DNA from: Bugula neritina
Lineage: Eukaryota; Animalia; Bryozoa
Assembly (NCBI GenBank): GCA_964035545.1
Contig: OZ037766.1
Coordinates: 15,366,722 to 15,430,721, forward strand
DNA: 64,000 bases
Direction of reading: 5' to 3'
In this document: positions 1,620 to 64,000 of the stretch, one piece after another
Position numbering within the stretch: position 1 is the first letter of the stretch
How the letters are laid out: each line of letters starts with the position of its first letter
Position numbers and translations under genes: made by a program
Notes under the pieces: generated by a model
Seen by the model: only the letters and a program-made list of their open reading frames with translations
What the model was told of the DNA's origin: nothing
Databases searched by the model: none

Positions 1620-2372
1620 ATGTCTTTGTCTCGCTTGTATATAAAAGCCAGCGAGTTCCAGTGTAGTTCAGACTACTACTGGAGCTCGCTGGTAGTAGGA
1701 CCACATAAGCTGTATCTGATGCAAATAAAGTTATCTTTCATTCGTACTCAAATACTTGGCTTATTTTTTCTAGAGCATGTAGGCACTAGTTGCATTCAAA
1801 ACCCACAGTTTACTACAATATCACTTTGACAAAGTTAGTGCAAACAATCAAAACTTTGGTAACACAGAAACTTTAGCATATGACAATTACTTATCTACCA
1901 GAAAAAGCCATTGTTCCCTTGTCTAAAATTATTACTTTTTCAAGTTTTTATGTCTAAATATTGCATCATCTGCCACTTCAACTGGCGAGTATGTTTAGAA
2001 TTTAGATAGATATCATACATATTACATGCAAATCCATTAAAGTTTGCCTTTTACTGCAAATGCAAATTGAATTGAAACTGCTAAAGATTGATAAAACAAC
2101 AGAATACATTTTCTGGTCAGATATTTTTAAAAATTGTACATTATTTATGGCTTATCTTAACAGTTGATGTGAAATAAGCAAACAAATTTTAATTTGAAAG
2201 CGAAAATGTATGAAACAGCTTTCTATTTTACAAAATATATTTAAGAAAGTTTGCAAATTTACATTATATTTTATTGCTAGTTATACTCAATATTGTTTAA
2301 TTACCGCTGCAATTTCTTGCTTTTCAAAATTATTTATGTGAAAATACAAAATATGATTTCTTTATGAAACTG

Positions 2373-2507
<135 letters not shown>

Positions 2508-2619
2508 GCCTAACTCCACATTTCCACATGTAACCATGCAAACATTCCACAAAATAGAGCTTTTAATATGGCCAATGCAGCTTGAAAACTGTACACAAAA
2601 ATAATCTTATACCAATTAC

Positions 2620-3122
2620 ACAAGAACACACACTAAAGAGAAACCATACGAGTGCCATGTACGCGACTTTAATTTTGGAGTGAAATACACTCTTACCCAA
2701 CACATGAAAACACATGCTAGGGAGAAACCATGTGAGTGGAGTTTAGACAGAAAAATCACATTACTAGTCACATAAAAATACATACAGAAGAAAAACAATT
2801 TGAATGCAATGTTTTCGACTATCAATCTAGAGAGAAATGCGCTTTTACTCGACACATGAAAAGACTCAGAGGAGAAAAACCATTTGTTTGTGAGGTTTGT
2901 GGTCATGCATTTACTGAGAAAGGAAATCTTACCAGACACATGAAAAGACACGCAGAAGAGAAACAACTTGAGTGCAGTGTATGTGACTGCAAATCTAGAG
3001 AGAAAAGTAGTCTCACTAAACACATGAAGACACACTGGCAAGAAGGTATTCAGTTAGCCTATAAACTCACTAAGCTGAGAAACCATTTTCTTGCCACTTT
3101 TGTCTTGTCAGGTGCATTTTAA
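2620..3122 (+). pseudogene. Degenerate tandem C2H2 zinc-finger array
   Basis: TGEKP-like linkers (HTKEKPYEC, HTEEKQFEC, GEKPFVC) and CxxC...HxxxH fingers. Several ligands are lost (ECHVRD, ECNVFD, HMKRL), and a frameshift/deletion near 2735 separates the first finger from ORF 2736..3122. Confidence 0.75.
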
Positions 3123-3572
3123 GAGCTGGTAGAAAAGTAACTATGTTTTCTCAATAAAGTTAAATTGATTTGTACATTTATATCTGGTAGCTATAACATA
3201 TTGTATTATTAGGTGAAAATGATCTACAAAACCCACCATCATGGAAGGTAGCCCAATATCTACAATTCTTAATGAATGTCTTTATAGTTGACTTAGTCTT
3301 TCCTACACAATTATATAGCAAATTTTTAATTTTAAACCAATCAGCAGCAAAGTGTCTTAATTAGAATCTGAGTTTCACTATTAGTCAATAAAGATATTTA
3401 TGTATTTAGTATTTATCTCAATAGCTTTTTCTTATATCAGTACTATTATTTTTTATGTAAAAGCTTCTCATTCAGCAAAATAATTATGAGTTGGGCTTCT
3501 TATATCTTCTGTTCATTATTACTGTGCTTTGAAAGAAAGCAATTATCCCATTCATCTTGTTTGGGCCTAGGC

Positions 3573-3876: not shown

Positions 3877-5131
3877 GCCTAAGCAAAGAAGATCATTTGT
3901 AAAAATATTCATTTCCCTGTGTTATACCTTTTATTAAAAATCTTTTAAACAGAAATAACCTTTTTTGAGATACTGGTTGTTTGCTTTGATTTTGCAAAAG
4001 TCTATAGCACATGTGCTACAATTCGCTTTAATACATACAGTGATAATGATAATTTACATGATAAGCCATGAAATAATCTGGTCCTTCATTCAAACAAAAG
4101 CATGATTTATACCAATTTTGTGAAAGCATTTTTAAACCAAACTCCGAGTAGTAATATCTGCAGATTCCTCACTATTCTACCTGGCCAATGAATAACTTGG
4201 TCATCTCTCTCGTCTCCAGTTGCTTATAATCCACTTTTCCGATGACATTGTTTGCCTGTCATTAAGAAGGTTTTCTATATTTTTTATCTTACCAACACCA
4301 ACTATGATGCTACATTATATTTTGCAAGATAAGATCGAATATACTAATATATAGCCTACATCATAAATTTAAGTTAGGCTTACTCTTTCTCAGAAACCAC
4401 AATAACAGTGTATGCCACTGATAGCATGCAATATATGTACATTGTATAGATACATGCATGTATATGTATAGATAGTAGATACATATATACATTTATATTC
4501 ATATAATGTATGTGTTGTGTGCGTGTGTGTATGTGTATCACTAGTAGATAGGCATTCTTCATTTTGTTGGGTCTCTATAGTTGCAGCTTCTGGTAGATGG
4601 TGTAGATGGTTTGAGCTCACTCATGCTATTTATTTAATATAATTTTATGGTTGCTAAAAGTAAAAGCCCCTAAAATTGTCATCATACCATTCCAAAAATA
4701 CTTAAATTTACTTACGTTAGTTCCTTATATATTCAATCCTTATAACCAGGCAGTGGATCAAAAATAACAATAATAACACATATAGCTTTTAATAAGGCAA
4801 TACTGAAATAGAAGTTGTCAGTAATAAGAACCTCCACTTTTTATTTTCTAAAACTATAAAATTATAAAATACATCTTTAATTTGATTGTTGAGGACAATG
4901 CAAAACCATAGGAATTTTACTGTCTTATTGTTACAAATAAGCTCTGCACATATTTTGTAAGCAACATTATCTAAAGCCCCACAATTGTGTTAATTGTTTG
5001 TGATATTGTTTAGTTTCTACATTCAATACATGAGTTTGAGAGTTGCCTTTTCCTAGTAGCTATAATGTTCGCTTTCAAATTTTCACTATGGACAATATAT
5101 ACAACTATATGACTATACTTATAGCAAACTA

Positions 5132-40800: not shown

Positions 40801-43800
40801 ATGTCTTTAGTTCGCACTAAGTCTTATGTTTGCCAAAACTAGCATTCAAGAGTTGGTAATAAGTGGGGAAACAATTTGCAAGGTGTATTTAAAGCAATTA
40901 CGACCAGTTATTTTGTTGAAACTTCCTAAGAGAAGTTGAGAATTTAAAGTGTTACTGTATACTATTGGGTATCTTGCTAGTTTTTTGTTGTTTAATATTT
41001 GAATTTCAGGCAAGTGCCATATTGTTAATCTTGAGTTTTATGCATGATATATACTTTATGCTAGATGAGTACTGGGAGTGGGTAAAGGAACACAAAGTAA
41101 AGCAACCAGCTAACGTCAATGAGGCCATGAGGAGTGAAAGCAAATCTTTGCATACTGCAAATGAGATAATGCTGGAGTTGATGCACAGAGAACCAGAGTA
41201 AATATCATTCTTCTTGCAGACATGGGAATGGAATTCAAAGTTTATATGCATATGCTTTGGTAGAACAGTTCGTTTCTGTGGGTCACGTGCTCTGTTTTGT
41301 GCCAACGAGAAAATAAACCCAGAAATAGTTGCTGTGTATGAATTGAATGTGTGTGTGCGGGTGTGTGTGCGAGGTTATTTATAGATGAATATTTGGAAAG
41401 CTAAATTTTGCTATTGTACCTGACTGCAGGGCTGTTCAACAAGCAGCTCCAGGGTCGCATTCGGCCTCTGGCCTACATTCATGTGTATCTCAAAGGCATA
41501 ACAAATAACATTATTTTACATACATATATGAATTAGAAACAAAAAGCCGCCTTTTCAATGTTCTTTTTATATACATGCTACAAAACATGCAGCCTGCAGT
41601 AATTATTTGGGCTTTATTATATAATATTCATAAAAATTTGGAATAAATCAATTTGAAAAATACTGATGAAGTGGCTCTTAGCTCAAACAAAATTTTACAA
41701 AGTGGCCCTCGCTACTGGGATATTCCATTTCAGTGTTCCTCGCTCTGGAAAGGCTGGGCACCCCTGTACCTGAGTTTTGTAGAATTTACATATTTTAGTA
41801 AACATTTATTATTTGAGATTTCAAATTATTTACAGAGATTCTCCATTTCAAAAGAAGCTTGCCACACTGTGGGACGGATTTGTTGAGCACACAAGCAAAA
41901 GCATTAGAGATTTCCTCAGTGTTGACCATTTAGCTTATGTTCTTACGCAGGTTGAAGGTAAGTTGGTGCATCATTTATTTGTCCCATTGTTTAAAGTATT
42001 GATGATGACAAATATTGTATTAACTTTGTATCTTGTCAACAATGGTCTAAGGGTTAGTGAACATGAAGTCATGGGTTCGAGCTTAATCAAAGGTCATTTC
42101 TGATGTTAGGAAGAACATCCAGTCATAATTGCTCCTGTGCCCCATCTGAACAAGTCCTTATCCCGATTTAACAAAAACTTCTTTCACCAGGGGTTTTCTC
42201 ACAGGGATGGTGACTACAAACTTGCAAGAGCTTTTTTTGTATTTGTATTGGTGATGGGAATATTGTATGAACTTTGTATTTTATCAACAGAAGCAAAGAC
42301 TAATCCTCAACGTAGTCGGAATCTTCCTGAATGGCTAGAGAGAGGAAAGCCACGTCTGCTGGTTGTCCCGGAAGGTGAGCAAAGTGGTTTTTTATTTTTA
42401 TAATAAAATTTCATAATAATATAAATTGAAATATACAGCGACACTAAGTAGATGTTGTTTCAAATGATTGATGATATTTATTCTTGTTGCTTAGCAACTG
42501 TTGGAAAGCCACGTCTGCTGGTTGTCCCGGGAGGTAGGTAAACTTTGTAGCAGCTATGGCTCTAGCAGACTGCATGTATGTATGCATTTATAGTCTAGCA
42601 GCAGAGAATGATATCACAATAGCCAAAATCACTCTGAGTAGAAGGCCTACAAGGAAGGATTCATTATTCTCAATTTAAGGAGATAACTTCTTTCTCATTC
42701 AATAAAAACAATTAGAGTTATTAAAAGGGAAATTACTAAATGCCAATAGATTATGAGTTACACAATAGACCATGTAAGATTGGTACATTTAGTACCTTGA
42801 ACCAATTCTAGATACTCACCACTATAACTTATATAAACTTCTGCAAGTTCAAATGCAAAATGCATACTTCTAGGAAATAGCTGTGCAACTTTTATTACAT
42901 GCATTATTTTATTTCATATCTTAAATTTATGAATCATGAGTTCATTTTTCAAAATGTTTAAATTAAGTGCTTAAAAAATACATTTAAAGAATGTATTCCT
43001 GAAAAATTACCCTGGAGCAGTTTGACCACAACCCCAGCTGTTCTGGCAAAACACATTTAATGACATTTTTATTGACATAGTGGTAAATGGGCTGGTTGTT
43101 TTTGGCAGTTGGGTATCCACTCGCTGTTCTGCAATTTTATACAATTCTGATTGGCTGGACTCTACATGACCAGCTAATGATTGTATCTGATTGGCCTAAT
43201 AATGCATTTGCATTTGAAAATGTAGAGTTTTATATAAGTTATAGTGGTGATATTTTAGAGTTGGTACACGCCCCTTTTTGGTTAGGTTTTATAGTCTGAT
43301 CATGCTGTAGTCATCTACAACACTTCAGTGTATGGGAAAATTATTAGTATTACGAAATCTGTTCTGACTTAGTTTGTAAGCAGCTATGTATAGGCAGTTA
43401 TAACTTAGGGTGATTTCATCAAAAGGCCTTAGAACATCAAATCAACCAGTGCTGTTACTTGGTTGTATTGTAAAGCAGTAGTGAGAGCATAGCATACTAG
43501 CACAGTCACTGAGCTGCAATGACAGTGGCTACACCAAACCTATCAGTTCCATTATAATAATATCTTATGTAAGGCATGTAAAAACACTAGGCTAGTCTCT
43601 GTTAGTATGTAGAGCAGTAGCACAGTTACAGCAGTCACACCACTCTATCCTGTCTACCAAGCGCAGAGGTAGCAATAATGATAATCATTTCATGATTTAG
43701 TTTTAAATCAATGCATACTACTAAATACATTCTCATAGCCTGGTTACTTTGCGTGCTTTAGTTTACTTTAATGTAATTATTTAAGAAATTATTTTACATG

Positions 43801-45949
43801 CTCATTACAAATGCATTAGCCTACGCTATAACCGTAAATTATTTGCTTGTGTACCCACTACTATTTTATTCTAAATTTGTAGAACAGCAGTTTTTTACTC
43901 AGTCACATATTCATCTGCATTGAGTTTAAATGCACAGCTTTTAGCAATAGATAATGTAGACATTTTGTATAAAAATGAGGATTAGCATGTAGTGCCTTGC
44001 ATGTGGGTCTATATTGTTAGTTGGTATTATCACCATGGTACCATGTTGATAACGCTTTCTTGTATATGATTTACTTAGCTAAACAGCATGATTATTCTAC
44101 AAATGTAATGACATCAGCCATGCATGGGACAATATAGTCTAGTTTCTTTTAACTGTGAAGTAATGTTTTATGCAATTTGCCATGTTTTTGTATAAGTGAT
44201 ATTCAAGTTGAACTTCTCAGCCTCAAGCCATTGCTGGATGAAATATATGTACTTAGCTCTGAAACTAATGCAATAACTTTACTAATGAGTTTTCAATACA
44301 TGTTTTAGTCAGTTGAGCAAAATACAAAGGCTCTTTCCTAATAATTTGGAATGTTAGAATAAATGGTCATTAAACATTGGGCTTGAAAAATTTTTCATAT
44401 TGTGTGATGCAACATGATAGCTACAGAAAAAATGCCGATACCACCAAAATGAAAGCATTATATTTCAGCACTGACTGCATACAATATTGATACTATATAA
44501 CAGAATATTATGTACACATAAGTTAGCATTTTGTAAAATGAGTATCACGTCTGAGCTGCCATTTACTTTCACCCAAAATCCTTTTCAACAATCATTGAGG
44601 CAAGCAGATATGACCAAGTATAATACTATTAGACTTTTATTTACAAAGCATAGTGGTATAGCACATGCGTATACAATAGCACATCAAGAAGAATATTATT
44701 ATAAAAGTGCTACACTTCATCGGTTACCAACGGTGGCTGCAGATTACAGAGAGCACAGCAGACTACCATTATCTTATCTAAAAGAGGTGCCAACAGTAAG
44801 CTTACACCCCCAGGACTATTTAAAATATTAAATTCCTTTATCCGTTTTATGGCTCTTTCAACGTGGATTCTAAGGTTAGCAATCAACTTAGTTTGCAGTA
44901 ACTGCGCTCTAGTCATTTGAGAATGGCCTCTCTTCCCAGGTGGCATGGCCAACTTGGCTCCAGCTCCTATTAGCTCTTCTTCAATAATAAAGCCTTTATC
45001 TGCCATGACCACATCACCTGGGTTTATGAGACCCAAGAAGCCAGAATCATTAACTATGCACTTGTCTGAGGCCCTACCTCCCATTCCAGGTGAAAGGAAG
45101 CATATAGTGCCTCTGGGTGTGATTGCAATAAGGTATTTGATTGTATTTGATTTTTTATATTCACTCCACGTCAAGGCTTGTGCCAACTTCGACTGTGGCT
45201 TGCATATAAATATTTCTGTGCAATCAATAATGCACCGAATGTTGGGATACTGACTTTGAAAATTGAGAGGAGTGTTCAATTTCTCTCTAGGGGGAAAAAT
45301 AATGAGATTTTTTAATTCTTTCGCTAGAATGGTTAATGTATCTTTGAAGATTTTGCTTGCTAGCATTCTAGAAATATAAAAAAGGTCAGCAAGCATTTGA
45401 AACTGCAGACCTTGACGCAGCTTCATCAAAGCCAACAAAAGCTCATCTTGTCTTGTTAACTTTTTTCTGAGAGTAAGACACCTCATCTTTGGGCATATAA
45501 ATCTATATAAAAGAATAAAAAATAAATTAACAGCTGGAAATTATATCAGTGTATGTTCAACATATATTTAGTTACTCAGTTTATATTCATTTAGCTTAAT
45601 CTGTGTCTAATAATTATAAAAAAAGAATAAAAACTGTTATAGCCTCAAATAATTGTGCTAACTATCATTGCTTTATAATATTTTATGTTTAAAATATTTC
45701 ATAAGTGTTGCTATTTATTTTAAACACACAGCAGTAACTTTAATGCCACTGTTGCCTGTTGAGCCTTGATGCATAAAATTTTCAATTTTTGAGGTGGGTA
45801 AACATATTTTTAACACCTTAAACTTACAACATTTATATTTAATGATGATTTAATTCAATATATTACATTTTACTTAATTTTATTTATTTTTAGTGCAGTT
45901 GATTACTGTATGAAACTATATAGGAGGGTGAGACTTTTTTAAATAAAGA

Positions 45950-46005
<56 letters not shown>

Positions 46006-49000
46006 AATGTGTGTGTAATTTTAATAGTACGGTAATAAACTTTAAACTTTTACCTTGCTAAAGAAAAATATAGAGATCGTGTAGGTATTCCAGTGTAAAA
46101 CTTGGTTCTTTCATCTGTTGTGGTAAACGTTTTGAAAACTTTAATTTTCCTAACAGCTGCCTTTTGTTTATACTTGGAAAATTCTGAGCTTTTTCTTATA
46201 ACTTTTGGTCCAATATTTAAACGCCTAGGACTCTTTTTTGCATTAGCTAGCAAAGTTTCTTCTTGCTCAGTTACCTCTAATGAAGTTTGACTACAAGGAT
46301 GGCTGTAAGATGAATTCTGTTGCTTTACATTTGTTGAATATTTTTTCTGTTCTTTTCTTTTTCCAGCTGTTTTGTCAAAACCACTGTTTTCTGTGCCTCT
46401 TGAACTATAAGTTTTGGTGCATTTGTATCCCAAGTGAAGGGTTGGGTTTGGATTTCGCTCAGTTGGCTGACCATCTTTAAAATGTAAGGAGCAAACTCTA
46501 GAATGCTGTTTTGGAGTCCATAAATTTCCTAATTCATCCTTCCGATTAATTAAAACACACCAGTCGTGACGCTGTTGCTCATTTTTTCGTGGGAACGTAT
46601 AGAGAGTAAAAGGATTCAATTGTCCAGGATTGCTCTTTCGAAACTTTTGAAGTTTATAATCTCCATTATGACAGTTTTTAACTGCGCAGATTCTCATGCC
46701 AATCTGTAAAATGCCAAGCAAAATATTCAGTATTGGATTAGATTCCTACCAGAACAAAACCTGATATAACTAAATGTGTATTACAAAAGGTAGTAAGATT
46801 TTTTTTCCCCAACATAAATGCTGGCATGCTGTAAAGTTGAGGAATATATCACAGATCTTTTGGAATATAAGTTGTGAACACAGTTTTGTGCTAAAGCCAG
46901 TAATTAATGTAGCCAATATTGGTGACTTTGAGTAAGTAAAAGTTGAGGAAATTTGATATAGTAGCCATTGTTGACTGAAACTTTCACCTGTTTTCAAAAA
47001 GTTGTGCATTCAATAAGAACAGCATTTGATTAGTTGCTCACAAACATCTCAGCCCTTCACAGTAAACTGATTTAAATAAATCTATTTTCAGCCAGATCTA
47101 GTTGGAAATGCGAAAAGTGAGAGACTAACAAATTTTTATCTATTACTAAAATACATAGACGCATATGCTCAATAAATTTCTGTACTTTGCTACAAAACTA
47201 TCCAAATGAAGACAGAAATCACATGTTCAGCGACTGACTTTAGTTAATTATTGTTGTAATAGTTACTCACCTTTTGTGTAGCTACTATAATCCACTAAAT
47301 CTTGTTATGAGATGAGTGTTAGTACCAGCATGCCAGAGTATGGTACAAACTAATGACGTACGCTGGGGAAAATATATTTTCTAAATTAGTTTCTGTTGTA
47401 AGTTTCTAACAGAAGGTATTTGTATTATAATAGCAAGCAAAACATAAGTGATATCCTTAGCAGATTTTACATTTACAGCATGAATGTTATTTCATCAACT
47501 CTGGTGTGATAATACCACAAAGTACCACATAAAAGTTTTAATTTGCTATTTATTCCTAACCCATCTAACATAAATATAGGCCATTGGTTGAGCTGTAAAT
47601 GATTGCAAGACACCCACAGTATTATTCACTCATGCTGTCGCAACAACAATTTCTCATTAAAATTCCTGGTTCCCATTAGGTAGAATATGTCAGCAAGCTC
47701 TGTGATGTGATTCATTTGCTTTCTGTTTACTGTTGGCTATGAGAATGTATTTAGTAGTATGCATTGATTTAAAACTAAATCATGAAATGATTATCATTAT
47801 TGCTACCTCTGCGCTTGGTAGACAGGATAGAGTGGTGTGACTGCTGTAACTGTGCTACTGCTCTACATACTAACAGAGACTAGCCTAGTGTTTTTACATG
47901 CCTTACATAAGATATTATTATAATGGAACTGATAAGTTTGGTGTAGCCACTGTCATTGCAGCTCAGTGACTGTGCTAGTATGCTATGCTCTCACTACTGC
48001 CTTACAATACAACCAAGTAACAGCACTGCATGGTTATTTGATGTTCTAAGGCCTTTTGATGAAATCACATTAAGTTATAACTGCCTATACATAGTTGCTT
48101 ACAAACGAAGTCAGAACAGATTTCGTAATACTAATAATTTTCCCATACACTGAAGTGTTGTAGATGAATACAGCATGATCAGACTATAAAACCTAACCAA
48201 AAAGGGGCGTGCACCAACTCTAAAATATCACCACTATAACTTATATAAAACTCTACATTTTCAAATGCAAATGCATTATTAGGCCAATCAGATACAATCA
48301 TTAGCTGGTCATGTAGAGTCCAGCCAATCAGAATTGTGTAAAATTGCAGAACAGCGTGTGGATACCCAACTGCCAAAAACAACCAGCCCATTTACCACTA
48401 TGTCAATAAAAATGTCATTAAATGTGTTTTGCCAGAACAGCTGGGGTTGTGGTCAAACTGCTCCAGGGTAATTTTTCAGGAATACATTCTTTAAATGCAT
48501 TTTTTAAGCACTTAATTTAAACATTTTGAAAAATGAACTCATGATTCATAAATTTAAGATATGAAATAAAATAATGCATGTAATAAAAGTTGCACAGCTA
48601 TTTCCTAGAAGTATGCATTTTGCATTTGAACTTGCAGAAGTTTATATAAGTTATAGTGGTGAGTATCTAGAATTGGTTCAAGGTACTAAATGTACCAATC
48701 TTACATGGTCTATTGCACACAACTAACTTGATCATTCACATATATTAAATTGTTATTTGTGCCAACAAGTTAAAAAAGTTCATATTTTTCCATTGAATAC
48801 GTAATGTGAGACTTAATTTCTAAATTCTAATTTGTTTTTACTCTTTCTTTGAAATGCTTTTAGTATATATTTGTTGATATAACTCTTCGAAGTCATTGTA
48901 TTGTCCTATATTTAGCTGACACTTATCGGCTGGTGCTGACAATATACCAGTGTGACCCAAATCTAGGATATCCTACACGAAATGAAGTTCTCATCTGTAA

Positions 49001-52000: not shown

Positions 52001-55000
52001 AGATGACTGAACCGGATGGCTCTCCAAGTTATATTGAACAACCTATGTTCGCTGAAAATGATGACCCAGATCCTAATTATGTGCTGACAATGGACAATGC
52101 CAAGAAGATTTTGGCCATACACCAGAGATTGCGGTGAGATTTTAGTGATGCATTTAAACCCCAGGGTTTAAGGCTAAATATTTGTCACACATCAAATACT
52201 GAGATAAGATATTAGTCATACATCATATACTAAGATAAGATATTAGTCATACATCAGATACTGAGATAAGATATTAGTCATACATCAGATACTGAGATAA
52301 GATATTAGTCATACATCATATTCTGAGATAAGATATTAGTCATACATCAGATACTAAGATAAGATATTAGTCATACATCAGATACTGAGATAAGATATTA
52401 GTCGTACATCAGATACTGAGATAAGATATTAGTCATACATCATATACTGAGATAAGATATTAGTCATACATTAGATACTGAGATAAGATATTAGTCATAC
52501 ATCAGAGACTGAGATAAGATATTAGTCATACATCAGATACTGTGATAAGATATTAGTCATACATCATATACTAAAATAAGATATTAGTCATACATCAGAT
52601 ACTGAGATAAGATATTAGTCATACATCATATACTAAAATAAGATATTAGTCATACATCAGATACTGAGATAAGATATTAGTCATACATCAGAGACTGAGA
52701 TAAGATATTAGTCATACATCAGATACTGTGATAAGATATTAGTCATACATCATATACTAAAATAAGATATTAGTCATATATCATATACTGAGATAAGATA
52801 TTAGTCATACATCAGATACTGAGATAAGATATTAGTCATACATTAGATACTGAGATAAGATATTAGTCATACATCAGATACTGAGACAAGATATTAGTCT
52901 TACAGCAAATATTGAGGTTAGATGATACACTGATTACTGAGATACATTAGAAACTGAATCATGTTATTATTAGTTATTGTAGATTGAAATTATAAAACTT
53001 ATTGCACACTATTGCTGCGTTACTGTTTTATGTTGTTATATAGAGTTGACATTCCTGTGATAATCATGGGAGAGACTGGTTGTGGTAAAACTAAACTCAT
53101 TGACTTTATGTCAAAGTTACAAGTGCCTACAGCTTTAAAGAAAGACATCACTACAATGATTACCGTGAAGGTAAAATGCATATTTGTGTTTCAAATTTTT
53201 TTTTAATAATGTTTCATTAAAATTTATCTGTTGTATTACTGTATCTAGTTATAAGAAGTTTTTTAATCTGACTAGGCACTTTAGTTTACCTTTGCTGTTT
53301 ATAACTCTATAACTTCAAAGTTTTCATTGTTTGTGGTATTTACTGTAAGATATGCCAGACTTTTTATGTTATCTAAAATCAATTTCAACGTTGATTTGTT
53401 TTATTTCGGAAATATAATTTTGTTTTAAACTGGTTCACTAGTAGATAATTCATTTTAGCCAGTAGCTCTATATTAATTATTAGTAACTAACATATAGTAC
53501 ATGAAGTCACAATTTTTACGCATTAAATGAATTTAAATACGAATGAATTTTTACATAAGATATAAAACCTGTGGTAGCACTTTAATGTTTATGTAAAAAA
53601 TATTTTGTACTTGAAATTGTTAAAACTTGTTGATGACACATAATTTAACTCAGCTTAACTTTTTTATGTTTGCAAAATCATGCCAACTGTTGTGTGGTTT
53701 TTGTCTTTTGTACTCAAATTTTTATTTCTACAGGTGCATGGTGGCACCACGGAGGATAGTATCATTGATAATGTTCTGAAGGCCCAAACATTAGCAGTTG
53801 AAAATCGTACAAAGTGTGAAGCATATGCCAGACAGTTTAAATCAAGTCAAGTAAGGATCTCCTGATATACTGTTGGCTGTATTGCTCAAATTTGCAGTAT
53901 TTTTAGAGCTATTTGCATGCAATTCTTCTGCCAGGTACTACATTCAAAATTGAAACTGTGAATAGCTATTTTTACAATCTGTAGATGTCAGCTATATGAA
54001 ATACATATATATGTCTAGTTGAGCTCATTGGTCAATGTTTTCATCAACTGAACACTTGTCAGGTAACATAACTCTTGATTGATAAGAACCCAGTTTATTT
54101 ATGTAATAATTATCAGTACAGGGCTTTTAGATTTAAACTTTGATGGATTTCTCTGCATGGCATCTGTTTTACTCTAGGTGCCAACTATCTACACAATCTT
54201 GTTCTTTGATGAGGCCAACACTACAGAAGCTATTGGTTTAGTCAAAGAGATACTCTGTGATGGTAGAATGAGAGGAAGACCTCTAGACAAAACATCTGGA
54301 CTAAAGATCATAGCAGCTTGTAACCCCTACAGAAGGTATGCTTTGCCAATTATTTATTTACTTAGTTTGCTTAAAAATATGAATGGCACTATAAGTATCA
54401 ATCTCTATTTTAATTCAGCTAAAAAGTAAATGCTGTAAAATTGCAAATATCTAAAAATCAATGTTCCAACCTTTTTGATAGTGCAATAAGCTGTAGAATT
54501 CAAAGTTTTTTTTATTGTTTCCAATATTTTTTGTTTTAAATGTTATATACAACAGATAATATTTTCCAAATACTAGACAGCTGTTACACTTAACAGTGTT
54601 TTACTATGTCTTTTTTCACTGGATGACTGGACCTTTCATCTTTAATCCATTATCAAACCTTCTTGCGGTTTGTGAGTTTAAAAGAGAAAATGTTGTAAAT
54701 TAACTATGGTTTAGTTTAGTATGTGTAACAGCATGGATGCTGTATGCTTTGAGCACAGATTCTGCACTACAGTTCAAATTATTTTTTATTGTCCATGGTT
54801 TAGAATATTGTATATAATCTGATTTAATTTACACTCAATAATTACAGTTATTGCTTTAAAAATTTTTACATCAATAGAAGCTAAAGATAACATAATACTT
54901 GCAATTATTTTGTCAATAAAGTGAAAGTTATGTACATCTTCATACAAAAGAAAAACTATGATTGAACTGAATACAGCTAACTTCTCTCCTCCATTTATTT

Positions 55001-58000
55001 AGCTGCACTGACTCATACCGTAACATTGATAACTAACAGTCAACAAACTATCTTCAAAACCCTTTCACCAAAAAGCTTTCACCAGAAAGCTTTCACCAGA
55101 AAGCTTTCACCAGAAAGCTTTCACCAGAAAGCTTTCACCAGAAAGCTTTCACCAGTAAGCTTTCACCAGTAAGCTTTCACCAGTAAGCTTTCACCAGTAA
55201 GCTTTCACCAGTAAGCTTTCACCAGTAAGCTTTCACCAGTAAGCTTTCACCAGTAAGCTTTCACCAGTAAGCTTTCACCAGTAAGCTTTCACCAGTAAGC
55301 TTTCACCAGTAAGCTTTCACCAGTAAGCTTTCACCAGTAAGCTTTCACCAGTAAGCTTTCACCAGTAAGCTTTCACCAGTAAGCTTTCACCAAAAAGCTC
55401 CTGTGACAATATGAACTGTGATAGGCTGATCAAATGCAATATAATGATTTCTATGTATGGGTTTTGTTCATTCAGTCGCCATAATCGTACACTATCTTCT
55501 GTTATAAATAAGCAATAACATATTTACTTATTACATATTTATTCACTGTAGTAGCTGCAATAAAGTAAGCATTTAGCTATAGCCACATTTTCAGCTGATT
55601 ACTTTGTGTCACACAGAAGTAATTATTGCTGCCCTTGTTCTAATACTCAAACAGTTTTAACCAATCTTCTTTTAATGAAAATAGAATATTTTTATAAGCT
55701 ATTCTATTGATTTGATATACAGAAAGTAGTCACCCGTACTCGACTACGACCGTATAGGTGTGAAAGGTGTGAAAAGAAGACTTGAGTATGTGAATATATT
55801 GGAATGGAATGACCATTGAGTGGAGCTCATGAAATGGTTTAAACATTCTTATTGCTCATTCTTTGTTTTGCAGACATTCTGAAGCCATGATAGAGAAGTT
55901 GAAGAAAGCTGGACTTGGTTACAATGTCAATGATTCAGAAACTACAGATAAGTTTGGTCTGTCATTTTTAAAAAGTTTTCATTTTCTCTTACCATTTACC
56001 ACTTGACATTTTAGACTTTTATTTTTTGTTATGCATGAACTATGTAGAAAGACTATACTTCAACATAAAACTGTTTGAAAATTGTAGGTCAGATACCGAT
56101 GAGACATCTGGTGTACAGAGTTCAGGCTCTTCCCCAGAGTTTACTTCCTCTGGTCTGGGACTTTGGTACTCTGAGATCTGCACCACCTCTACCAAATGGT
56201 GAGCCACAAGCTGGAGATGTAGAGACAGCTTACATCAGACAGATGATTGTCAAGTTTGTAAGTTGATTACTAATTTTGAATTTTGAATTTTGTTTTAATT
56301 TTAATGATTAAGTTATTGTTAATCATCAGGATGTATTCGTGGAATAGTGTATATGTTGGACTAACGGAAACTATTAAATATTTAATTGTTCTGTTATAAA
56401 GAATTCCACCAACATAGCTCCGGAAATACGAGGCATACACTTTACTCATCATACGCCACTCATTGCACAAATTCTTTCCATGTCTCAAGCATTTATGAGA
56501 GAGCAAAGGGTGAGTAGCTAGACATTATAAGACTTGCATATGTGTGTACTCATGTGTATGATATGTATGTACTCATGTGTATGAAATGTGTATATGTTTG
56601 TGATACATGTATGTATGCATGTGTATGTATGCATGTGTACATGTGTGTACTCATGTGTATGTAAGTATTTTTTTAATAATTTATTTACCTTCAACGTGTA
56701 TTGAGCTTTAAGTTTTTACTGTTTATAAAATACTGCATGTGTATAGTTTAGTGTATAGTGTATGTTTAGTAGCATGAAACTTTTTAGTTTAATAACTGAT
56801 TCATTATGTTTGTTGTAGGATGAGTGCAGCTTTGTTAGTCTAAGAGACGTGCAAAGGCTGCTAGACGTCACAAACTGGTTTTATAGTCAGCGAGATTACA
56901 TTTTCCCAGCTATGGATGGTGACCAGATTGTTGAAGAGTCCAGCGATGATGAAGATTATGAGGAGGACGCACCAGCACCTACACTTATGATAAATGTATG
57001 TAAAGGCAACTGCCTTCCTAACGAAAATGCTGCTAGTATATGAGTTTGTTTGCCTAGCAGTTTGCTTTCTTTGGCTGAGATAGCTGTGCAATGCCATGTT
57101 TTTAATAAAAACAATATTAATTGTAATACATAGGAAGGTATGTTGTCATATTTAGTTTTAAACATATAGCGTAGGATGTTAGACCTCATGCATTAATTCC
57201 TATAAATCAGCTGGTTTAATAACGTAGAGTTGTATATTCAATATTCCTACGCAAAGTTATTGTTTATCTTGTAAATTATGCTGTACCTTTCAACAAAAAT
57301 TTAGCTGGTCACCCATTACTGTAGCCATATATATATACATGTGTTCATTTGTTGTAGTTAATTTTCTGCTAGTAGGCTTTCTTAACCATCTTGATATGTA
57401 CACACACCTTGAAACACGAGAATCAATTATTTAAAATTTATTATTCTTTTTGTTTATTGTTTTGTTTGTGTTTTGTGTGTTTATAGAAAGACTACACCAC
57501 CAGAAGTTTGGTACTGGCTCTAGCAGTCTGCTATATTGCTAGACTAGAAGAAAATACCAGAGAGCAATACATTGAATACATCGCACCAAAAATTGAAGAG
57601 CTCATTGGACGAGATGATATTGATGCTCAAGATTTTATCAGAACGGAAATTGAAAGGTGGGATGTTACCAGAGAGTTTCTATATTCTAATCTGTGTATAT
57701 GTAGTGTATTGTTTTACAATTTCTTTTTAATCATCAAACATCATTTTTATGGGAAAAGGTTATGAACAGTAGTCGATGTTCTTATAATTTTAATATTTGT
57801 GTATGGAAATATAATTTTTTTCCCAAAATGTTGTTTTTACGTATTGAGCCATTTAATTTACCAAAATTATTTTTAGATGTCAAGACATGTTCATCAACGA
57901 AGTAGTGAACACAGATGTGCACAAGAACATTGCTAAGAACAAAGCTCTTAAAGAAAATGTCTTCATGATGATTGTCTGCATTGAGAATAGAATTCCTCTT

Positions 58001-61000
58001 TTCCTGGTTGGAAAACCTGGCAGCTCTAAATCTTTGTCCAAAGCTATGGTCGTGGATGCAATGAAAGGTGGAAGTTCACACAGCAATGTTCTTAAGCACC
58101 TGAAAAGGGTATGTAGAAACTAAATGTTTTACCTTAGCTTAAGATCACACAGAATGTGTTTAGGATTTGAACATTTTACATTTCAATAAATGCAATGATA
58201 TACTGCTTATTGGAGTGTCTCATTACATCATTTGGCTATGCATCTGTTTTCTAGTATTCTGTATGTCACCAGCATGCTCATACCATATGATATTTTTTAG
58301 ACCTATATGGTGTCTTTCCAATGCAGCAAACACGCTACACCAGCTGGAATTGTTGGCGTTTTTAATCACTGTGCAATATTTCAAAAAGATCAAGATTTGA
58401 ACGCATTCGTCTCAGTTGTGGTACTTGATGAAGTTGGATTGGCTGAAGATTCCGAAAACATGCCTCTTAAGGTCTTGAATTCAGTTTTTCTAATATTTAC
58501 ATTTTATAAATTTTTATTAATTTTCAAATTAAAAAAAGTTTTTATCACTGTAACAGATATCTATGTATTGTGGAGATTACCCAGTAGTTCCTGTGGTGTA
58601 ATGGCTAGTGCGCCTGCTTGCAAGTTGGAGGTCTTGGGTTCGAAACCCAGTGGAGGCAAATTTTTTATAGTCGATTTATGGTTTTAGGCTTTACATCCTC
58701 TGCTAGAAGATGGTTGTGAAGACAGTGGTGTAACACCAGAACCATACATGAAGTGTGCTTTTGTTGGCATCTCTAACTGGGCACTGGATCCAGCCAAGAT
58801 GAACCGTGGTATATTTGTCCAGAGAGGAACGCCATACACCAATGAGCTAGAAGAAATTGCTCGGTATATTGTTATTGTAACAAGCTTGTTGTAAAATGTG
58901 TTATCACAACCATTGAAAAGGGAAAATGTAGTAGCTCAGGGAAGGCCATTGTCTGTAGTGGTGTTTGATCTACAAGGAGTGGACTTAGTTTTAAATTAAA
59001 GTTTGACCAATCAAGACTAACTATAGTTTATCATATTTGTTTAGTTTTTGACCAGTTTTTATCAAGATGTCCGTTTTGTGAACATAAATGCTGCATGTAG
59101 TGATTTCTGTCATGAGTCAGTCTACATTAAATTGATTTTATTACAATTTACTCTTCTAAATGAACTTTACTGGTCATTGATGAACTACTTCTTGTTGATT
59201 TATTATTGAGTAGAGGTAAGTTAGGTAGTAAATAAATTCAACAAGTTTTAACTAAAAAGTTTAGTAGTGGTTATCTTTGCATTGAAAACTTTTGCCACTA
59301 TCTCCACTAACAGCAGCTGTGATACAGGTTGGTAAACTATAGTCAAGTCACTTTCACACTAGTAGCTTGGTTAACGGAACATAGATGGGCATTTAATTTT
59401 TTGTTACTTTTGAGTCAGTGAATATCTTCACACTAAAATTATTTTCTAGAATATTAGTCTCACACTAACGCTAACTGCGACAAGTACTGTTATTGTTCAC
59501 TTGTCTTCAGTCACGATGTTATGGGAGAGGGTTTCTATTCAAGTTGAATAAAATAAAAGAATTTCAAATAGTTTTATATATTATTTATAGAGAAATTTGT
59601 GGCAGTTTATCGAAAAATGTTGCCAACTATATCTCGCCTCTAGCAAAAGGTTATTTGGAAATTTGTGATGAGCAGAAGTCAAAAGAACGAGATCTGACTG
59701 AATTCTTTGGACTTCGAGATTTCTATAGGTTCTGTACACTACACTTCAATGAAAAACATTGTGTTATATTGACTTTCTATTAGTAACCTTTAGCTATCTG
59801 TACAAAATATATTTTCATGGTAACAATTTTTCATGTATATATAAAATAATTTATAATAATACCTAATTTTTTGCAAACACTTTCAAAAACTGAGATTAAA
59901 CTAGATGACATGTTTAGTTATAGATTTTTTCACCTATTTCAGCTAATTGCATTTATCTTGTGTTTCGGTGTTTGTATTTAGTATAATGTTAAATCAATTT
60001 ATCTAGTGATATGTCAATATACTAATATGTCCTCCATTCTTTCTTCAATAATGTTTTCTTGTAGACTCAATTCATTGCGCTGACTTGTTTTGCTGCTACT
60101 ATGATTTTTAGTCTGATGAAAATGGTGACCAGCTTTGCAGCTAAAAGCAATGGCACCATTAACAGAAATCAGTTAGAGCACAGCATACGGCGTAACTTTG
60201 GAGGGTTTGACACCGATTCATTCGACCCAATGGATGTCTTCAGGAGACATTGCAGGGCATTAGACACACTTCCTCATCAGGAAGATGGCCGCCCTCCTAT
60301 TGACTCTATTGGCCTGATTCAGTCCAGTCTTTCTGGCCAAGATACTGCAGCTCCTGGGTAAATTGTCATCGATGTTTGTTATCACTTTAACATATAGATA
60401 TGATAGAATATAAATTATAGACTTCTCATATATTATAAACACTAAATGAAATATAAATATACTTCTGATATATGTGATAAATACTGTAGAATGGAGAGCA
60501 GATATCTGCTGATTCTGACAGAGAATCTCAGTGTTCTCAGTATCATAATGGATGAGTTCTCAACTCACAACCAGCAGCCAGAGGTCGTGTTTGGCAGCAA
60601 GTTTAGAGATGATGTAACCTACACTCAGGTTGGTTCTATACTACACTTAGTCCAGATATATGACTTTCTATTACACAGAAGTGGTTCTGGTATGGTTCTG
60701 TTGTGTTTAGTAGTGTCAGTTTATATTTCTCATCAAAGTTTGAGAATCAAATTGTTGTTCCTACAATTAGTTTTGCATGCTTCCACTCACCAGACTCTGG
60801 AATACATTGGTAGGTGTGTCACAACATCTATAGAATAAAGACATGCATGAACATGGGTAAACCTGTGATCCTACTCAATCTTGATGATCTGTACGAGAGT
60901 CTATATGACGCCCTCAACCAGTATTTCTCTACTGTGGGAGACCAAAAGTTTGTGGACCTTGGGCTTGGTACTCACAGAGTTAAAACTTCTGTTGCAAACA

Positions 61001-63597
61001 ACTTCCGGTAAGTTATTTACAAAACCAGAATATTGAATTTAGTTATGTAGACTATTATGTATTAACCTACTTAAAATACTAACCTAAAGTTAGCCTCATA
61101 TAACTAAAGTTTCGTTTATACCTCTGCTGAAATAAGTACCAAGTTTCAGTTAATAACACTCGTCCTTTATAGTCTTACTGAACCTCGGTGAAATCATATT
61201 GATGTGGAAGTTAACTTTCTGAAAAGTGAAATATGACTCGCCTAATCGCTATTTGATGCTCTTTGAAAATGCCGTGGATTAGTAAAGTTGGCAGCATGTA
61301 AGCGATAATTTAGAAGGCGTAGGCGATATGATTATTAACATATAAGTACGTCATCTAATCACCAAACTCATAATTAAATAACGATATTTACAAGGAGTTA
61401 TTACTTTTTTCGAGTATTATTTCGAACTCGATCGATTAAGTTATCACAGTACAAAAATGTTTACGAGTGGCTTTTGCAACGCAACTCGGTGAAATTTTAA
61501 CTCCGCCAAATTGAATTTCTGACTGAAAATCGTGAAGGTATAAACGCAACTTGAGACATTTTTGTTTTGGAGGCTTTGAATTTGGTTTGATATTTGATCT
61601 AAAAAAAGTATTCTCCTAATATCGACTACCTCTACAATAGGTATCTTTCTAATTGATATGTGATATGATGGCAGACTAAGTGTTCTATGTAAGGGCACTA
61701 CAATAGAAGTGTAATATATTATTGTTTGTACATATTGACAGACTGGTGGTGATAGCTGACAAGAACAAAGTACACTCCCAGTTTCCAATTCCTCTCATTA
61801 ACCGTCTAGAGAAACACTATGTCTCTGCTACTTCCCTTCTCACAGATGAACAGAAGCAAGTGAAGAGAGAGCTGGAGAACTGGGCTGAAAAGTTTTTCAT
61901 GCCTTTGCCTATTTACAAGTATGTATGAGGCATGGGTGTTGAAATATATCTATTCTGCAATTTATAATATTTTAGTTTTGTAAGCTCTAATTGAATTGGC
62001 AATAATTGTTTCATTTACAACATGATTGAATTTAGATGTCTATGTAGGCTAAAGCATGTTGAAACACACTATAACTTTATATTCTTCATTTTACAGAAAA
62101 AAGTTTCTCAGATAATGAAATCTTGGTTTCAAAGTTTGAGAAAAATAAGATTTTTGGTGATGATTTATTATCCAAGCTGCAATAGATCTTTAGCTCAAAA
62201 CTGGACAGCAAACTTGCAACATTTTTGGTTTTATTCCTAAAAGGCTGCTATTAGTGGTGTAATAAAATGAATTTTTAAAATGATCACACCATATATTAGG
62301 TGTAGGTAATTAAGAACAGAAAGTAATGTTTGATGGAAAACTTTTACTCCTGTGAGAACCACTGATAAAGGTTTCTTTTTGAGCTGACGACCGCATATGC
62401 TGTGGCACAGGAGCATTTATGATTGGAATCTCTTCTTCACATCACCAATGATTCTACTAGGATTCGAACATATAACTTGGTGAATGCTAGTCCAGCGATC
62501 TATCCGTAGTTCCTCCCTTGTTATACTCATTTAGTTCTTGATAATTGTTTATAATGCTTGAAAGCTTAAACTGTATAGGACATTTTTTCAAATCTGGTTT
62601 TGAACGCCTAAAAGGTTAATGTCACTTTATTAAATTCAGATTTATTCAGCCTGTGATTTGATTATGTTGATTTCTATTTTATGCTACGCAAATGATTGTT
62701 ATAACTGAAAATTACTAACCGTACTGCTTGTATTTTTAGAAATGTTTGTCCTTCACACTGCCAAGGCTGTGATATTGAGCTGAACCAACCTTTCAGGTTG
62801 CCATGTGATCACTACATTGGCCGCTGCTGCCGAGATAGAATATTCAGAGCTGGCACTCACCAATGTCCAGTTGATGACTGTGATGAGGTGCTTGATGCTG
62901 AGTACCAGTGGACAATAGACAGAGCTGCTCTAGAGAACAGGTCTTACTTTCTTTATCAGATGCTAATGTCTTACTACATTTTATACATTAAAATTCTTCT
63001 GACTTACAATGCAGGTCCACACCCTAAGACATATTTATCTCTGGTTAGTTAAAGACACAAATTGGCATTTAATGAAATACTTTACTGATGTTGAGTTTTG
63101 AAACAAGGGCTAGCTGAGTTACATTATTGATTTATAATAACCTAAGAATATTTCTCTGTCCACATCTGTACGTGGTGTGTTGGCTGTTACAGACAATACT
63201 TTGAGAACTGCACCACTGAGAATACTTTTATTGGGTACAGCACCGAGACAACTGCTATTGCCGTTAGACAAGCAACTGCTGATGTTGAACAGGCAACTCC
63301 TGAATGGCATAACGAAGTATGTTGTTTTGAAAACTTGTCATTTTCTTACTCGCCATATGTAGTAAATTAAAGTATTTTCTTATTTATGAATTTTTTTTTC
63401 AGGTGCTAGAAAGATCAAAGTTTTACATGCTTCAGTGTGCTACTGGAGAGGCGGTGCTACGCCTAGACAGGACACGCCTACAAGCTGAGGCTGGTCAGAT
63501 TCAGGATGTGTATATGACTAAGCAATCTCATGAGAGTCTAATTCAATATCTCAGTCAGCAAGTCAATCTGACTTCTTCTACCAACCTCTACATCCAG
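19624..63597 (+). CDS. RNF213: RNF213/mysterin-like AAA+ ATPase E3 ubiquitin ligase, ~60 coding exons in the window, 3' part beyond the window
   Basis: N-terminal CPHC..PKFCSECG resembles the start of vertebrate RNF213, followed by a CBM20-like YKY..EW..NR segment. Other motifs: LNFYTTEQLV, YPTRNEVLIC, SNRAGVGKS (49608), GETGCGKT (53069), LFFDEANT, GKPGSSKS (58010), VVLDEVGLAE, FFGLRDFY, SLYDALNQY, FPIPLINRLEKH and MLQCATGEAVLRL. Checked junctions are phase-consistent, and I found no in-frame stops. Orthology versus paralogy is unknown. Confidence 0.93.
21647..22600 (+). CDS. RNF213: RNF213-like large S/T-rich low-complexity exon with a 30-bp coding repeat
   Basis: Phase 1-1 exon inside ORF 21589..22668, containing TTGKEAPSST-type repeats at ~22410-22560. 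Confidence 0.8.
29678..29871. mobile_element. Palindromic (foldback) MITE, ~195 bp
   Basis: aatgatttgttctacaagcagctccaagttg...ctgagtgcag pairs with ctgcactcag...caacttggagctgcttacagaactaatcatt. The central hairpin is cccaaaccactt/aagtggtttggg. Confidence 0.75.
30527..30741 (+). mobile_element. tRNA-derived SINE, full length, with a 15-bp TSD
   Basis: TSD tatctgagcatagca at 30512-30526 and 30742-30756; A box tggtctagggg, B-box-like ggtttaagccc, T-rich tail. Confidence 0.9.
32710..33635. mobile_element. ISL2EU-like MITE with an AT target duplication
   Basis: TIRs of about 55-60 bp (A[G/A]ACCCTTTTCACAAGTCCCTT...ATTTATAATTTGAA), flanked by AT at 32708-32709 and 33636-33637. No coding capacity. 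Confidence 0.8.
35430..35861. mobile_element. Kolobok-like MITE, copy 1
   Basis: TIRs AGTTGC(C/G)TTTATACCT...AGGTATAAACGCAACT with TTAA-like flanks. An inverted homolog is at 61108-61551. Confidence 0.7.
41427..41766. mobile_element. hAT (Charlie-like) MITE
   Basis: CAGGGCTGTTCAAC ... GCTGGGCACCCCTG termini, internal GTGGCTC/GTGGCCC motifs, and tacctga(c/g) near both ends. Confidence 0.6.
42043..42240 (+). mobile_element. tRNA-derived SINE copy
   Basis: Same family as 30527-30741 (tggtctaagggtt...ggttcgagc...gatgttaggaagaacatccagtcataattgc...T tail). Confidence 0.8.
42767..43740 (+). repeat. Left terminal inverted repeat
   Basis: Near-identical reverse complement of 47735-48711, with scattered substitutions and small indels. 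Confidence 0.95.
44710..46697 (-). CDS. Spliced THAP-HTH-DDE (DDE_Tnp_4 / HARBI1-like) transposase, ~478 aa
   Basis: Exon 46697-46054 encodes THAP (CAVKNC...FP...W...RVCSLHF...P) and an FYTG motif. It joins via the GT-AG intron 46053-45503 in frame to 45502-44710 (LLLALMKLRQG HTH; catalytic IIDCTE, MADKGF, RIHVERAI). Confidence 0.9.
45953..46003. repeat. (TA)n microsatellite in the transposase intron
   Basis: Pure TA run. Confidence 0.97.
47735..48711 (-). repeat. Right terminal inverted repeat
   Basis: Reverse complement of 42767-43740. Confidence 0.95.
52186..52898. repeat. 31-bp minisatellite, ~23 copies
   Basis: Unit CATACATCAGATACTGAGATAAGATATTAGT in direct tandem, with no spacers. 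Confidence 0.97.
55062..55399. repeat. 14-bp minisatellite AAGCTTTCACCAG(A/T), ~24 copies
   Basis: Direct tandem array: a block of A-variants followed by a block of T-variants. Confidence 0.97.
58587..58658 (+). pseudogene. tRNA-like sequence (tRNA pseudogene or SINE head) in an RNF213 intron
   Basis: A box TGGTGTAATGG, B box GGTTCGAAACC and a downstream T run. The acceptor and anticodon stems pair poorly. Confidence 0.6.
61108..61551. mobile_element. Kolobok-like MITE, copy 2 (inverted relative to 35430-35861)
   Basis: Same TIRs; the internal aagttatcacagtacaaaaat...tttacgagtggctttt is the reverse complement of part of copy 1. Confidence 0.7.
62345..62505 (-). mobile_element. tRNA-derived SINE copy, minus strand, diverged
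   Basis: The reverse complement shows gttcgaatcc...ggtgatgtgaagaagag...cataaatgctcctgtgcc, matching the SINE family. Confidence 0.65.
62740..62940 (+). CDS. RING-like zinc-finger exon inside the RNF213 AAA region
   Basis: Phase 2-2, 201-nt exon (AG at 62738-39, GT at 62941-42) encoding CQGC-x11-CDH-x4-CC-x11-CPVDDC. Confidence 0.8.
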
Positions 63598-64000
63598 GTA
63601 TTCAAACTCGTAGACTTGTATTTACAGTATTCAAATGAGCAAAAATGTTGTTTGCTGGCTTTGTTTACAAATTTTAACTCATATATCATGTCATAAATTT
63701 TGTGTTTAATATAATGAAAGTTTTGAATTTCAAAAAGTTTTAAACTATAACAATGTAGGCCGATTAATCTGTCTTCAGATGAAGCTGCATATTTAGAAAA
63801 ATAGGTGCTATTTAAAATGTCGTCTGTGAAACCAATCGTGTTATCTCTATGCTTACATTGATGGGGTAAAAAAGACAAGAACATTCTTTTGTGCTTATCA
63901 CTTATAGCTTTATTAGATTCTGATTTCTCTCTAGCTGTTTAGAATACATTTAATGGCTGTATGTCAAAGACTCTGCAATATGTCTTGCGTATAAACTAGC

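Follow-up and report, generated by a model that had tools for sequence, protein, structure and literature searches.

In a 64,000-nucleotide stretch of the genome of the bryozoan Bugula neritina (C2:15366722-15430721, hereafter the window), a gene of the RNF213 family carries inside its AAA+ motor a single small exon encoding an additional domain, best called an atypical RING, with a core of ~45 residues and a conserved tail. The inserted RING is a family-wide trait of the paralogues examined here and of another bryozoan, not the oddity of one gene, and it constitutes a lineage-specific architectural variant of a known family, solid as an observation and moderately surprising. We propose that the gene's own RING cassette, held on one exon, was duplicated in the bryozoan lineage into an intron of the same phase, and would then have been inherited by all paralogues examined, which keep the canonical RING and the RZ finger. 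The duplicated RING would project from a surface loop of variable length that follows the presumed first lid helix of AAA5; the site is some 45 residues past the conserved PLINRLEKH segment and comes immediately downstream of the equivalent of mouse IR5. On the AAA4/5/6 half of the ring it may then act as a docking knob stabilised by zinc, which would recruit a partner, a substrate or another subunit. To this explanation as a whole (real exon, atypical RING, intragenic duplication in bryozoans, docking knob on AAA5) we assign a probability of roughly 0.7.

Results

The inserted exon and its host gene

The initial annotation had placed a 201-nucleotide exon of phase 2-2 between two flanking AAA exons, and all of its coordinates and phases proved correct (Table 1). 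The sole open frame of the inserted exon starts at 62741 and gives a Cys/His-rich peptide of 66 codons. The exon supplies the third base of the codon begun by the upstream exon, and the downstream exon completes its last codon; skipping keeps the frame, as had been claimed, because AA+A codes for Lys with or without the exon. The upstream exon appears to carry the first helix of the AAA5 lid in addition to the end of the large subdomain.

The host gene was identified by searching the window exons individually, with the spliced context taken from the database proteins P0040 and P0019 of Watersipora subatra, a cheilostome bryozoan. The upstream exon matches mouse RNF213 (7oik) at residues 3107-3157 with a phmmer expectation value (E) of 7.6e-11, the exon at 60491-60628 matches residues 2998-3041 (E 1.5e-6), and the frame with the GKPGSSKS motif matches residues 2698-2763 (E 2.8e-20) as well as human RNF213 (E 4e-22). 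The alignment output for that frame also contains the human AAA3 P-loop segment GETGCGKT, as a second and non-significant stretch (score 0.4); the window has a GETGCGKT frame of its own at 53012-53206. Positions 63403-63591 align to mouse residues 3211-3266 at an E of only 0.13, with nine of nine listed matches being RNF213 chains. The downstream exon, searched alone against the PDB, matched no RNF213 chain, because it is too short and divergent.

The gene thus shows an AAA core of dynein type, in which AAA3 and AAA4 bear Walker A sites, together with the conserved AAA5 segments around the IR5 region (ESRYLL..., FP.PLINRLEKH). After this core come a canonical RING in the E3 (ubiquitin ligase) module and, towards the C-terminus, an RZ finger (PF20173) that is split over two exon pieces, its profile positions being contiguous across the intron. 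The canonical RING exon lies beyond the window at C2:15439816 (L016; L020:9801-9986), 10.4 kb downstream of the inserted RING, where a RING at the canonical position was to be looked for, and passes the Pfam profiles zf-RING_UBOX (32.4 against a cut-off of 25.2), zf-C3HC4_3 and zf-C3HC4. With the canonical RING and the RZ finger kept downstream, the gene is therefore a full member of the RNF213 family with one extra RING, and the RNF213-like AAA+ host claimed at the outset is borne out by AAA4 and AAA5 exons that match mouse RNF213 with E from 2.8e-20 to 0.13. The published limits in mouse RNF213 are 1775-3405 for the AAA core, 3063-3103 for the IR5 insertion of the AAA5 large subdomain (AAA5L) and 3940-3999 for the E3-RING (PMC7311170). 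By these limits the insertion site falls in AAA5 just after IR5, the equivalent of which precedes the upstream exon.

Table 1. Positions of the exons, frames and domain pieces discussed; positions without prefix are those of the window
Feature	Position	Strand	Description
Inserted RING exon	62740-62940	+	201 nt = 1 base + 66 codons + 2 bases; AG at 62738-39, GT at 62941-42
Upstream exon	61742-61918	+	FPIPLINRLEKH motif, closing the AAA5 large subdomain; last 2 bases belong to split codon; donor GTATGT
Downstream exon	63193-63316	+	FIGYS motif; opens with 1 base of split codon, closes on complete codon
Next exon	63403-63597	+	LQCATGE segment of AAA5 lid; donor at 63598
Exon starting AAA5	60490-60628	+	ESRYLLILT; preceding intron phase likewise 2|1; placed by splice sites and mouse match
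Open frame with AAA4 Walker A exon	57887-58123	+	GKPGSSKS; frame limits, not exon bounds
RZ finger, first piece	L021:4413-4508		profile positions 13-24 (20.6 bits)
RZ finger, second piece	L021:5019-5126		profile positions 25-54 (35.7 bits; cut-off 27)
Further copies of the inserted exon	five in C2 15.07-15.43 Mb cluster; C2:26.88 Mb; C3; C4

An insertion apparently particular to bryozoans

Compared with vertebrate RNF213 (mysterin; mouse cryo-electron microscopy structures 6TAX and 7OIK, Ahel et al. 2020, PMC7311170), the window gene has the AAA4 Walker A, AAA5, the RING and the RZ finger in the same order. The vertebrate protein has one RING (3940-3999 in mouse) and a short, Cys-poor linker at the site, whereas the window gene has there an extra RING exon of 67 residues, ~780 residues before the canonical RING position; neither mouse nor human RNF213 has space for such a domain at the site. 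Between the aligned flanks lie ~116 residues in the window gene, compared to ~52 in mouse RNF213. The flanking segments had been described as contiguous in vertebrate RNF213, and they essentially are, except that this short variable linker stands between them.

A search with residues 700-910 of W. subatra P0040 returned 119 RNF213-like fragments with the P.PLINRLEK motif, 114 of which reach an FIGY-like motif. The distance from motif to FIGY is 46-63 residues, with no RING pattern between, in 113 of the 114 spanning fragments, the homologous segment reading D[VA]FIGYH; a distance of 126 residues with a RING occurs only in the bryozoan protein. The RING-less fragments include fish, the cephalochordate Branchiostoma (amphioxus), Saccoglossus, the bivalves Ruditapes and Dreissena, the gastropod Gigantopelta and the coral Orbicella. 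A widespread insertion among invertebrate RNF213s was one outcome to be checked, and the RING stands at this site in just one of the 114 spanning fragments. The search for homologues of whole P0019 matched just two W. subatra proteins. Literature searches turned up no paper that describes an RNF213 with a second RING in its AAA core; a Bugulina transcriptome paper merely lists RNF213 as up-regulated in autozooids.

An atypical RING

In the 66-residue translation of 62741-62938, the ligands are C7, C10, C22, H24, C29, C30, C42 and C47, and the eight-ligand pattern reads C-x2-C-x11-13-C-x1-3-H-x4-C-C-x8-n-C-x2/4-C. Over 29 sequences, C10, P17, C22, H24, C30 and C42 are invariant and C7, L14, G27, C29 and C47 at least 90% conserved; the eight ligand columns are 93-100% conserved, position 29 being otherwise His (2/29). 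The arrangement departs from the canonical C3HC4 spacing, C-x2-C-x(9-39)-C-x(1-3)-H-x(2-3)-C-x2-C-x(4-48)-C-x2-C, in that ligand 5 stands at H+5, its usual place at H+3 being taken by an almost invariant Gly, and ligand 6 keeps its usual distance from the His. The Gly at the fifth-ligand position and the adjacent extra Cys pointed out in the initial annotation are thus real (G27 in 28, C29 in 27 and C30 in all 29 sequences, a conservation far in excess of chance), as is the atypical character suspected from them: eight conserved ligands in an H-x4-CC spacing. The last ligand pair is C-x4-C in most copies and C-x2-C in a minority. Variant ligand sets occur among the proteins P0014, P0024 and P0018, two having His for Cys29 and one having Cys for Gly at the canonical ligand 5 with the CC kept. 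A further conserved Cys (Cys3, window 62747-62749) stands in the CP..C prefix before ligand 1, with no obvious partner ligands.

The domain scores below the cut-off of every Pfam RING profile (zf-C3HC4_5 17.3 bits against 27, zf-C3HC4 14.9 against 21, zf-RING_2 12.2 against 27.3), and recognition by profile therefore failed; structure comparison and language-model features nonetheless point to a RING. An AlphaFold2 (AF2) model built on the 29-sequence alignment has a predicted local distance difference test (pLDDT) score of 77.6 and a central helix at residues 28-37. Its matches among the 48 best Foldseek rows are domains of RING type, namely RINGs proper plus two U-boxes and a single SP-RING, at template-modelling (TM) scores of 0.62-0.73, with a root mean square deviation (rmsd) of 1.7-2.4 Å for the best. 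Among them are TRAF6 (TM 0.66), UHRF1 (0.68-0.73), TRIM32 and the RNF213 RING 9jta_C (rmsd 1.8 Å over 51 columns). The features of the protein language model ESM likewise indicate C3HC4 RING clusters. A cross-brace RING fold is accordingly what the modelling predicts, and the segment does model as a RING, the check proposed for it.

In sequence searches of the PDB the inserted domain scores best against the RINGs of TRAF6 and Tfb3, not that of vertebrate RNF213, at E of ~1e-3. It resembles TRAF6 in how ligands 1-4 are spaced and in having CPV(D) behind ligand 7, and the Tfb3/MAT1 type in the C-x4-C last pair and the helix. Unlike these RINGs, it has the displaced ligand 5 (H-x2-G-x-C-C) and a Gly for the Ile of C-P-I-C in TRAF6, and it is embedded in an AAA lid loop instead of standing at an N-terminus.

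Paralogues, other organisms and selection

The six-frame search of the Bugula genome found the inserted exon at no fewer than eight places, with protein identity to the window copy of 37%-88% by different comparisons. Recognisable flanking exons surround seven of the eight copies, the exception being the divergent L011 (C2:26.88 Mb), and acceptor, donor and the 1-base/2-base phase are identical in all eight. The upstream exon is 76-91% identical in the paralogues, in which the exon at 63403-63597 is also conserved. The RNF213-like genes form an expanded family at C2:15.07-15.44 Mb, C2:26.88 Mb, C3:24.20 Mb and C4:18.80 Mb; six copies are clustered on C2 within 0.37 Mb, in both orientations. 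In each of six copies the inserted RING is followed, at a distance of 8-12 kb, by a canonical RING.

The ratio of nonsynonymous to synonymous divergence (dN/dS) of the RING exon is 0.20 between the window and the copy at C2:15279800 and 0.06 between the paralogues L006 and L008; for flanking exons it is 0.10-0.29 in the four comparisons with dS of at least 0.1. A fifth flank comparison, of the 123-nucleotide exon 63193-63316, gives ~0.53 at a dS of only 0.04 and is too short to weigh. The intron adjoining the RING exon is only 85% identical. Judged from these substitution ratios, purifying selection acts on the inserted exon as strongly as on the constitutive exons beside it.

A profile of the eight copies, run against 1.84 billion representative proteins, yielded 25 matches, and for 22 the value is below 1e-10. 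Short open frames of metagenome or run assemblies make up almost the whole list; the one named protein is XP_067940320.1 of W. subatra. This species has a locus with the same exon order and the canonical RING 34 kb downstream. The RefSeq model P0040 splices FPIPLINRLEKH (748), the RING (797-862) and FIGYSS (875) together, and P0019 has the RING followed by the FIGYSS exon. Three assembly contigs (L024, L026, L027) show the same exon order as the window gene. At the W. subatra locus L023 (OY755163.1:20913290-20957693), the NCBI annotation splits an RNF213-like gene into models of 783 and 613 amino acids. The split falls between the upstream exon and the RING exon, the second model beginning at a Met inside the RING, where the paralogue P0040 reads through. 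Routine annotation would miss the inserted RING because it stays below all Pfam RING cut-offs, and a W. subatra model is even split there.

Origin of the inserted RING

Alignments of the inserted and the canonical RINGs match one another in hhalign with a probability of 97.6% (E 4e-12), and BLASTP gives 37% identity (E 4e-8). In the whole-genome six-frame search, six of the eight next-best matches after the inserted kind are the canonical RNF213 RINGs of the paralogues. Both kinds are single symmetric exons of the 1-base...2-base type that start 1-2 residues before CP..C and end after an acidic tail. They also have in common the alternation of C-x2-C with C-x4-C and a [DE][FY].[WY] tail, which occur in canonical RNF213 RINGs of other taxa as well. 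The CP..C prefix is present in 22 of the 25 inserted RINGs that reach it and in six of six canonical bryozoan RINGs, and not in the canonical RNF213 RINGs of other taxa.

The contig L024 (ENA ERZ4903308), from another organism, has a further RING exon of the inserted type (L024:2853-3038) at the AAA4/AAA5 border, in the intron that separates the homologue of the window exon 60101-60361 from the ESRYLLILT exon. This further RING shares 50% identity with the AAA5 RING of that organism (E 2e-23) and has the same 1-base/2-base phase; P0020, from another assembly, is a near-copy of it. The matching intron of the window, before 60490-60628, has the same phase as the RING-bearing intron of L024; an extra RING of this type at the AAA4/AAA5 border is absent from the window's own genome. 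A single origin of the inserted RINGs is compatible with a maximum-likelihood tree built from 28 RINGs.

These sequence comparisons give good support, short of proof, to an intragenic duplication of the exon in the bryozoan lineage. Of the two routes of exon shuffling considered at the outset, copied or moved, the evidence indicates a copy: the canonical RING is retained, phase, boundaries and motifs are common to both, and hhalign joins them at E 4e-12. The RING was also expected to be of RNF213 type, and the similarity to the gene's own canonical RING upholds this, even as the best PDB sequence matches are TRAF6 and Tfb3. Capture of a TRAF6-derived RING from another gene was considered and rejected, the PDB similarity being generic (E ~1e-3) and that to the gene's own RING far stronger. 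A nested separate gene was likewise dismissed, since the exon is in phase with the host gene and is spliced into the P0040 model.

Discussion

The inserted domain is likely to be solvent-exposed on the AAA5 lid, because it follows the helix after PLINRLEKH in a loop whose length varies among taxa. RING-E2 interfaces, through which ubiquitin-conjugating enzymes (E2) are bound, typically involve a hydrophobic residue between ligands 1 and 2 and a basic linchpin after ligand 8. Position 9 of the inserted RING, the E2 contact aligned to the Ile of C-P-I-C in TRAF6, is Gly in 17, Ala in 4, Met in 4 and another residue in 4 of the 29 sequences; position 48, after the last ligand, is Asp in 12, Gly in 9 and Arg or Lys in 3. 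Judged by these general features, the two positions do not provide the usual E2-binding surface. In mouse RNF213 lacking the RING, auto-ubiquitination is like that of the wild type, the canonical RING being dispensable for ubiquitin transfer, and a change of nucleotide state in AAA3 and AAA4 is believed to shift the AAA4/5/6 half of the ring, to which the AAA5 lid belongs, as one unit (PMC7311170). A docking module is favoured over a second catalytic RING on the strength of Gly or Ala at position 9 and Asp or Gly at position 48 (21 of 29 in each case) together with the dispensability of the mouse canonical RING.

The alternative that the inserted RING is a second working, E2-recruiting RING, by which the protein would offer E2 two places to dock, the ATPase ring among them, we regard as unlikely, yet as the foremost competitor. 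The predicted RING fold with all eight ligands would suit it, as would the closest solved structures, which are E2-binding RINGs (e.g., in TRAF6-Ubc13 complexes), the Pro after ligand 7 in 25 of 29 sequences and a hydrophobic residue at helix position 34 in the same number. Set against these are the loss of the Ile/Leu/Val contact and of the basic residue after the last ligand in most sequences, the failure of the domain at every Pfam RING cut-off where the gene's canonical RING passes, and a mouse canonical RING that is itself not needed for ubiquitin transfer (PMC7311170). Somewhat less probable still, and not exclusive of the docking function, would be a regulated cassette exon that gives rise to RING+ and RING- isoforms of different function. 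Skipping keeps the frame and symmetric exons are the usual substrate of cassette splicing; the symmetry, however, is no more than what insertion into a phase-matched intron would produce, the exon is present in both W. subatra models extending to the site, and purifying selection on it is as strong as on the flanking constitutive exons.

A RING at the AAA5 site that was ancestral to RNF213 and lost in other animal lineages is improbable. The RING tree, it is true, cannot place the inserted RINGs inside the bryozoan canonical ones; but fragments from cnidarian, mollusc, hemichordate, cephalochordate and vertebrate sources have no RING at the site, so that many independent losses would be needed, and only the inserted and the bryozoan canonical RINGs have the CP..C prefix in common. 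Least credible of all is a tolerated loop insertion without function, or a mis-called exon. The site does lie in a loop of variable length, with 46-63 residues from motif to FIGY among taxa, while dN/dS values of 0.06-0.20, ligand columns kept at an overall identity of 35-86%, and splice sites conserved in all copies and in other species speak for a coding exon under constraint.

Several points weigh against the explanation by a duplicated RING that docks partners on AAA5. Inclusion of the window exon in mRNA is argued from conservation, selection and the gene models of another species. The case for a RING that does not engage E2 is built on two alignment positions and general knowledge of RING-E2 contacts, with Pro retained after ligand 7 in most sequences and Met at the E2-contact position in four. 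Surface exposure and the assignment to the lid are suggested by alignment and variable loop length, and a single-sequence AF2 model of P0040:300-910 was unusable (pLDDT 38). Only 62% of the bootstrap trees for the 28 RINGs unite the inserted RINGs in a single group; the tree does not name the donor, and the canonical bryozoan RINGs are not shown as sister.

There exist analogies between the proposed docking knob and known systems. In dynein, functional insertions are found in the small subdomains of AAA units, the stalk emerging from AAA4S and the buttress or strut from AAA5S. The RNF213 core is dynein-like (PMC7311170), and the window gene would resemble dynein in having a single-chain ring of six AAA units with an appendage from the small subdomain of a late unit. 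The appendage differs in being a zinc finger rather than a coiled coil. Classical exon shuffling involves domains on symmetric exons, as in the 1-1 phase modules of extracellular proteins. The inserted RING is alike in that a whole domain on one symmetric exon was evidently copied into same-phase introns, at two to three sites in the gene family. It is unlike these modules in that what was copied, within one gene and into an enzyme core, is an intracellular RING, and in belonging to the 2|1 split-codon class instead of the common 1-1 class. The case is an unusually clean one, with the same phase, the same boundaries, the donor still present and a further copy elsewhere.

RNF213 is a much-studied ligase in immunity and Moyamoya disease, and the crosstalk between its ATPase ring and its E3 module is still being worked out. 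By its position the inserted RING picks out a presumed surface loop of AAA5 able to accommodate an entire folded domain, and so offers a ready-made probe; it also suggests that partners may be recruited at the ATPase ring itself. As a bolder and doubtful extension, the RING could be understood as a mobile intragenic cassette, planted at least twice in junctions of the ATPase ring, once at the AAA5 lid, as in all copies, and once, in a single organism, at the AAA4/AAA5 border, so as to create multi-RING AAA+ ligases in an expanded and probably immune family. These docking fingers would shift with the nucleotide state of AAA3 and AAA4, and ATP sensing would thereby gate the recruitment of partners or E2.

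Other features of the locus

An intron of the RNF213-like gene contains a DNA transposon of ~5.95 kb (window 42763-48715). Its terminal inverted repeats of ~980 bp (42763-43740 and 47735-48715) are 98-99% complementary, and the near-identity of these arms suggests a recent insertion. On the minus strand it has a Harbinger-type transposase frame at 44710-45486 (DDE_Tnp_4, E 2.4e-46, and HTH_Tnp_4) and a THAP-domain frame at 46050-46721 (E 5e-10). A downstream intron holds a long tandem repeat (L020:7481-7829, equivalent to window positions ~70,760-71,110) that reads LSEW, THLA or SHSL in different frames, and (CA)n-type microsatellites lie farther downstream.

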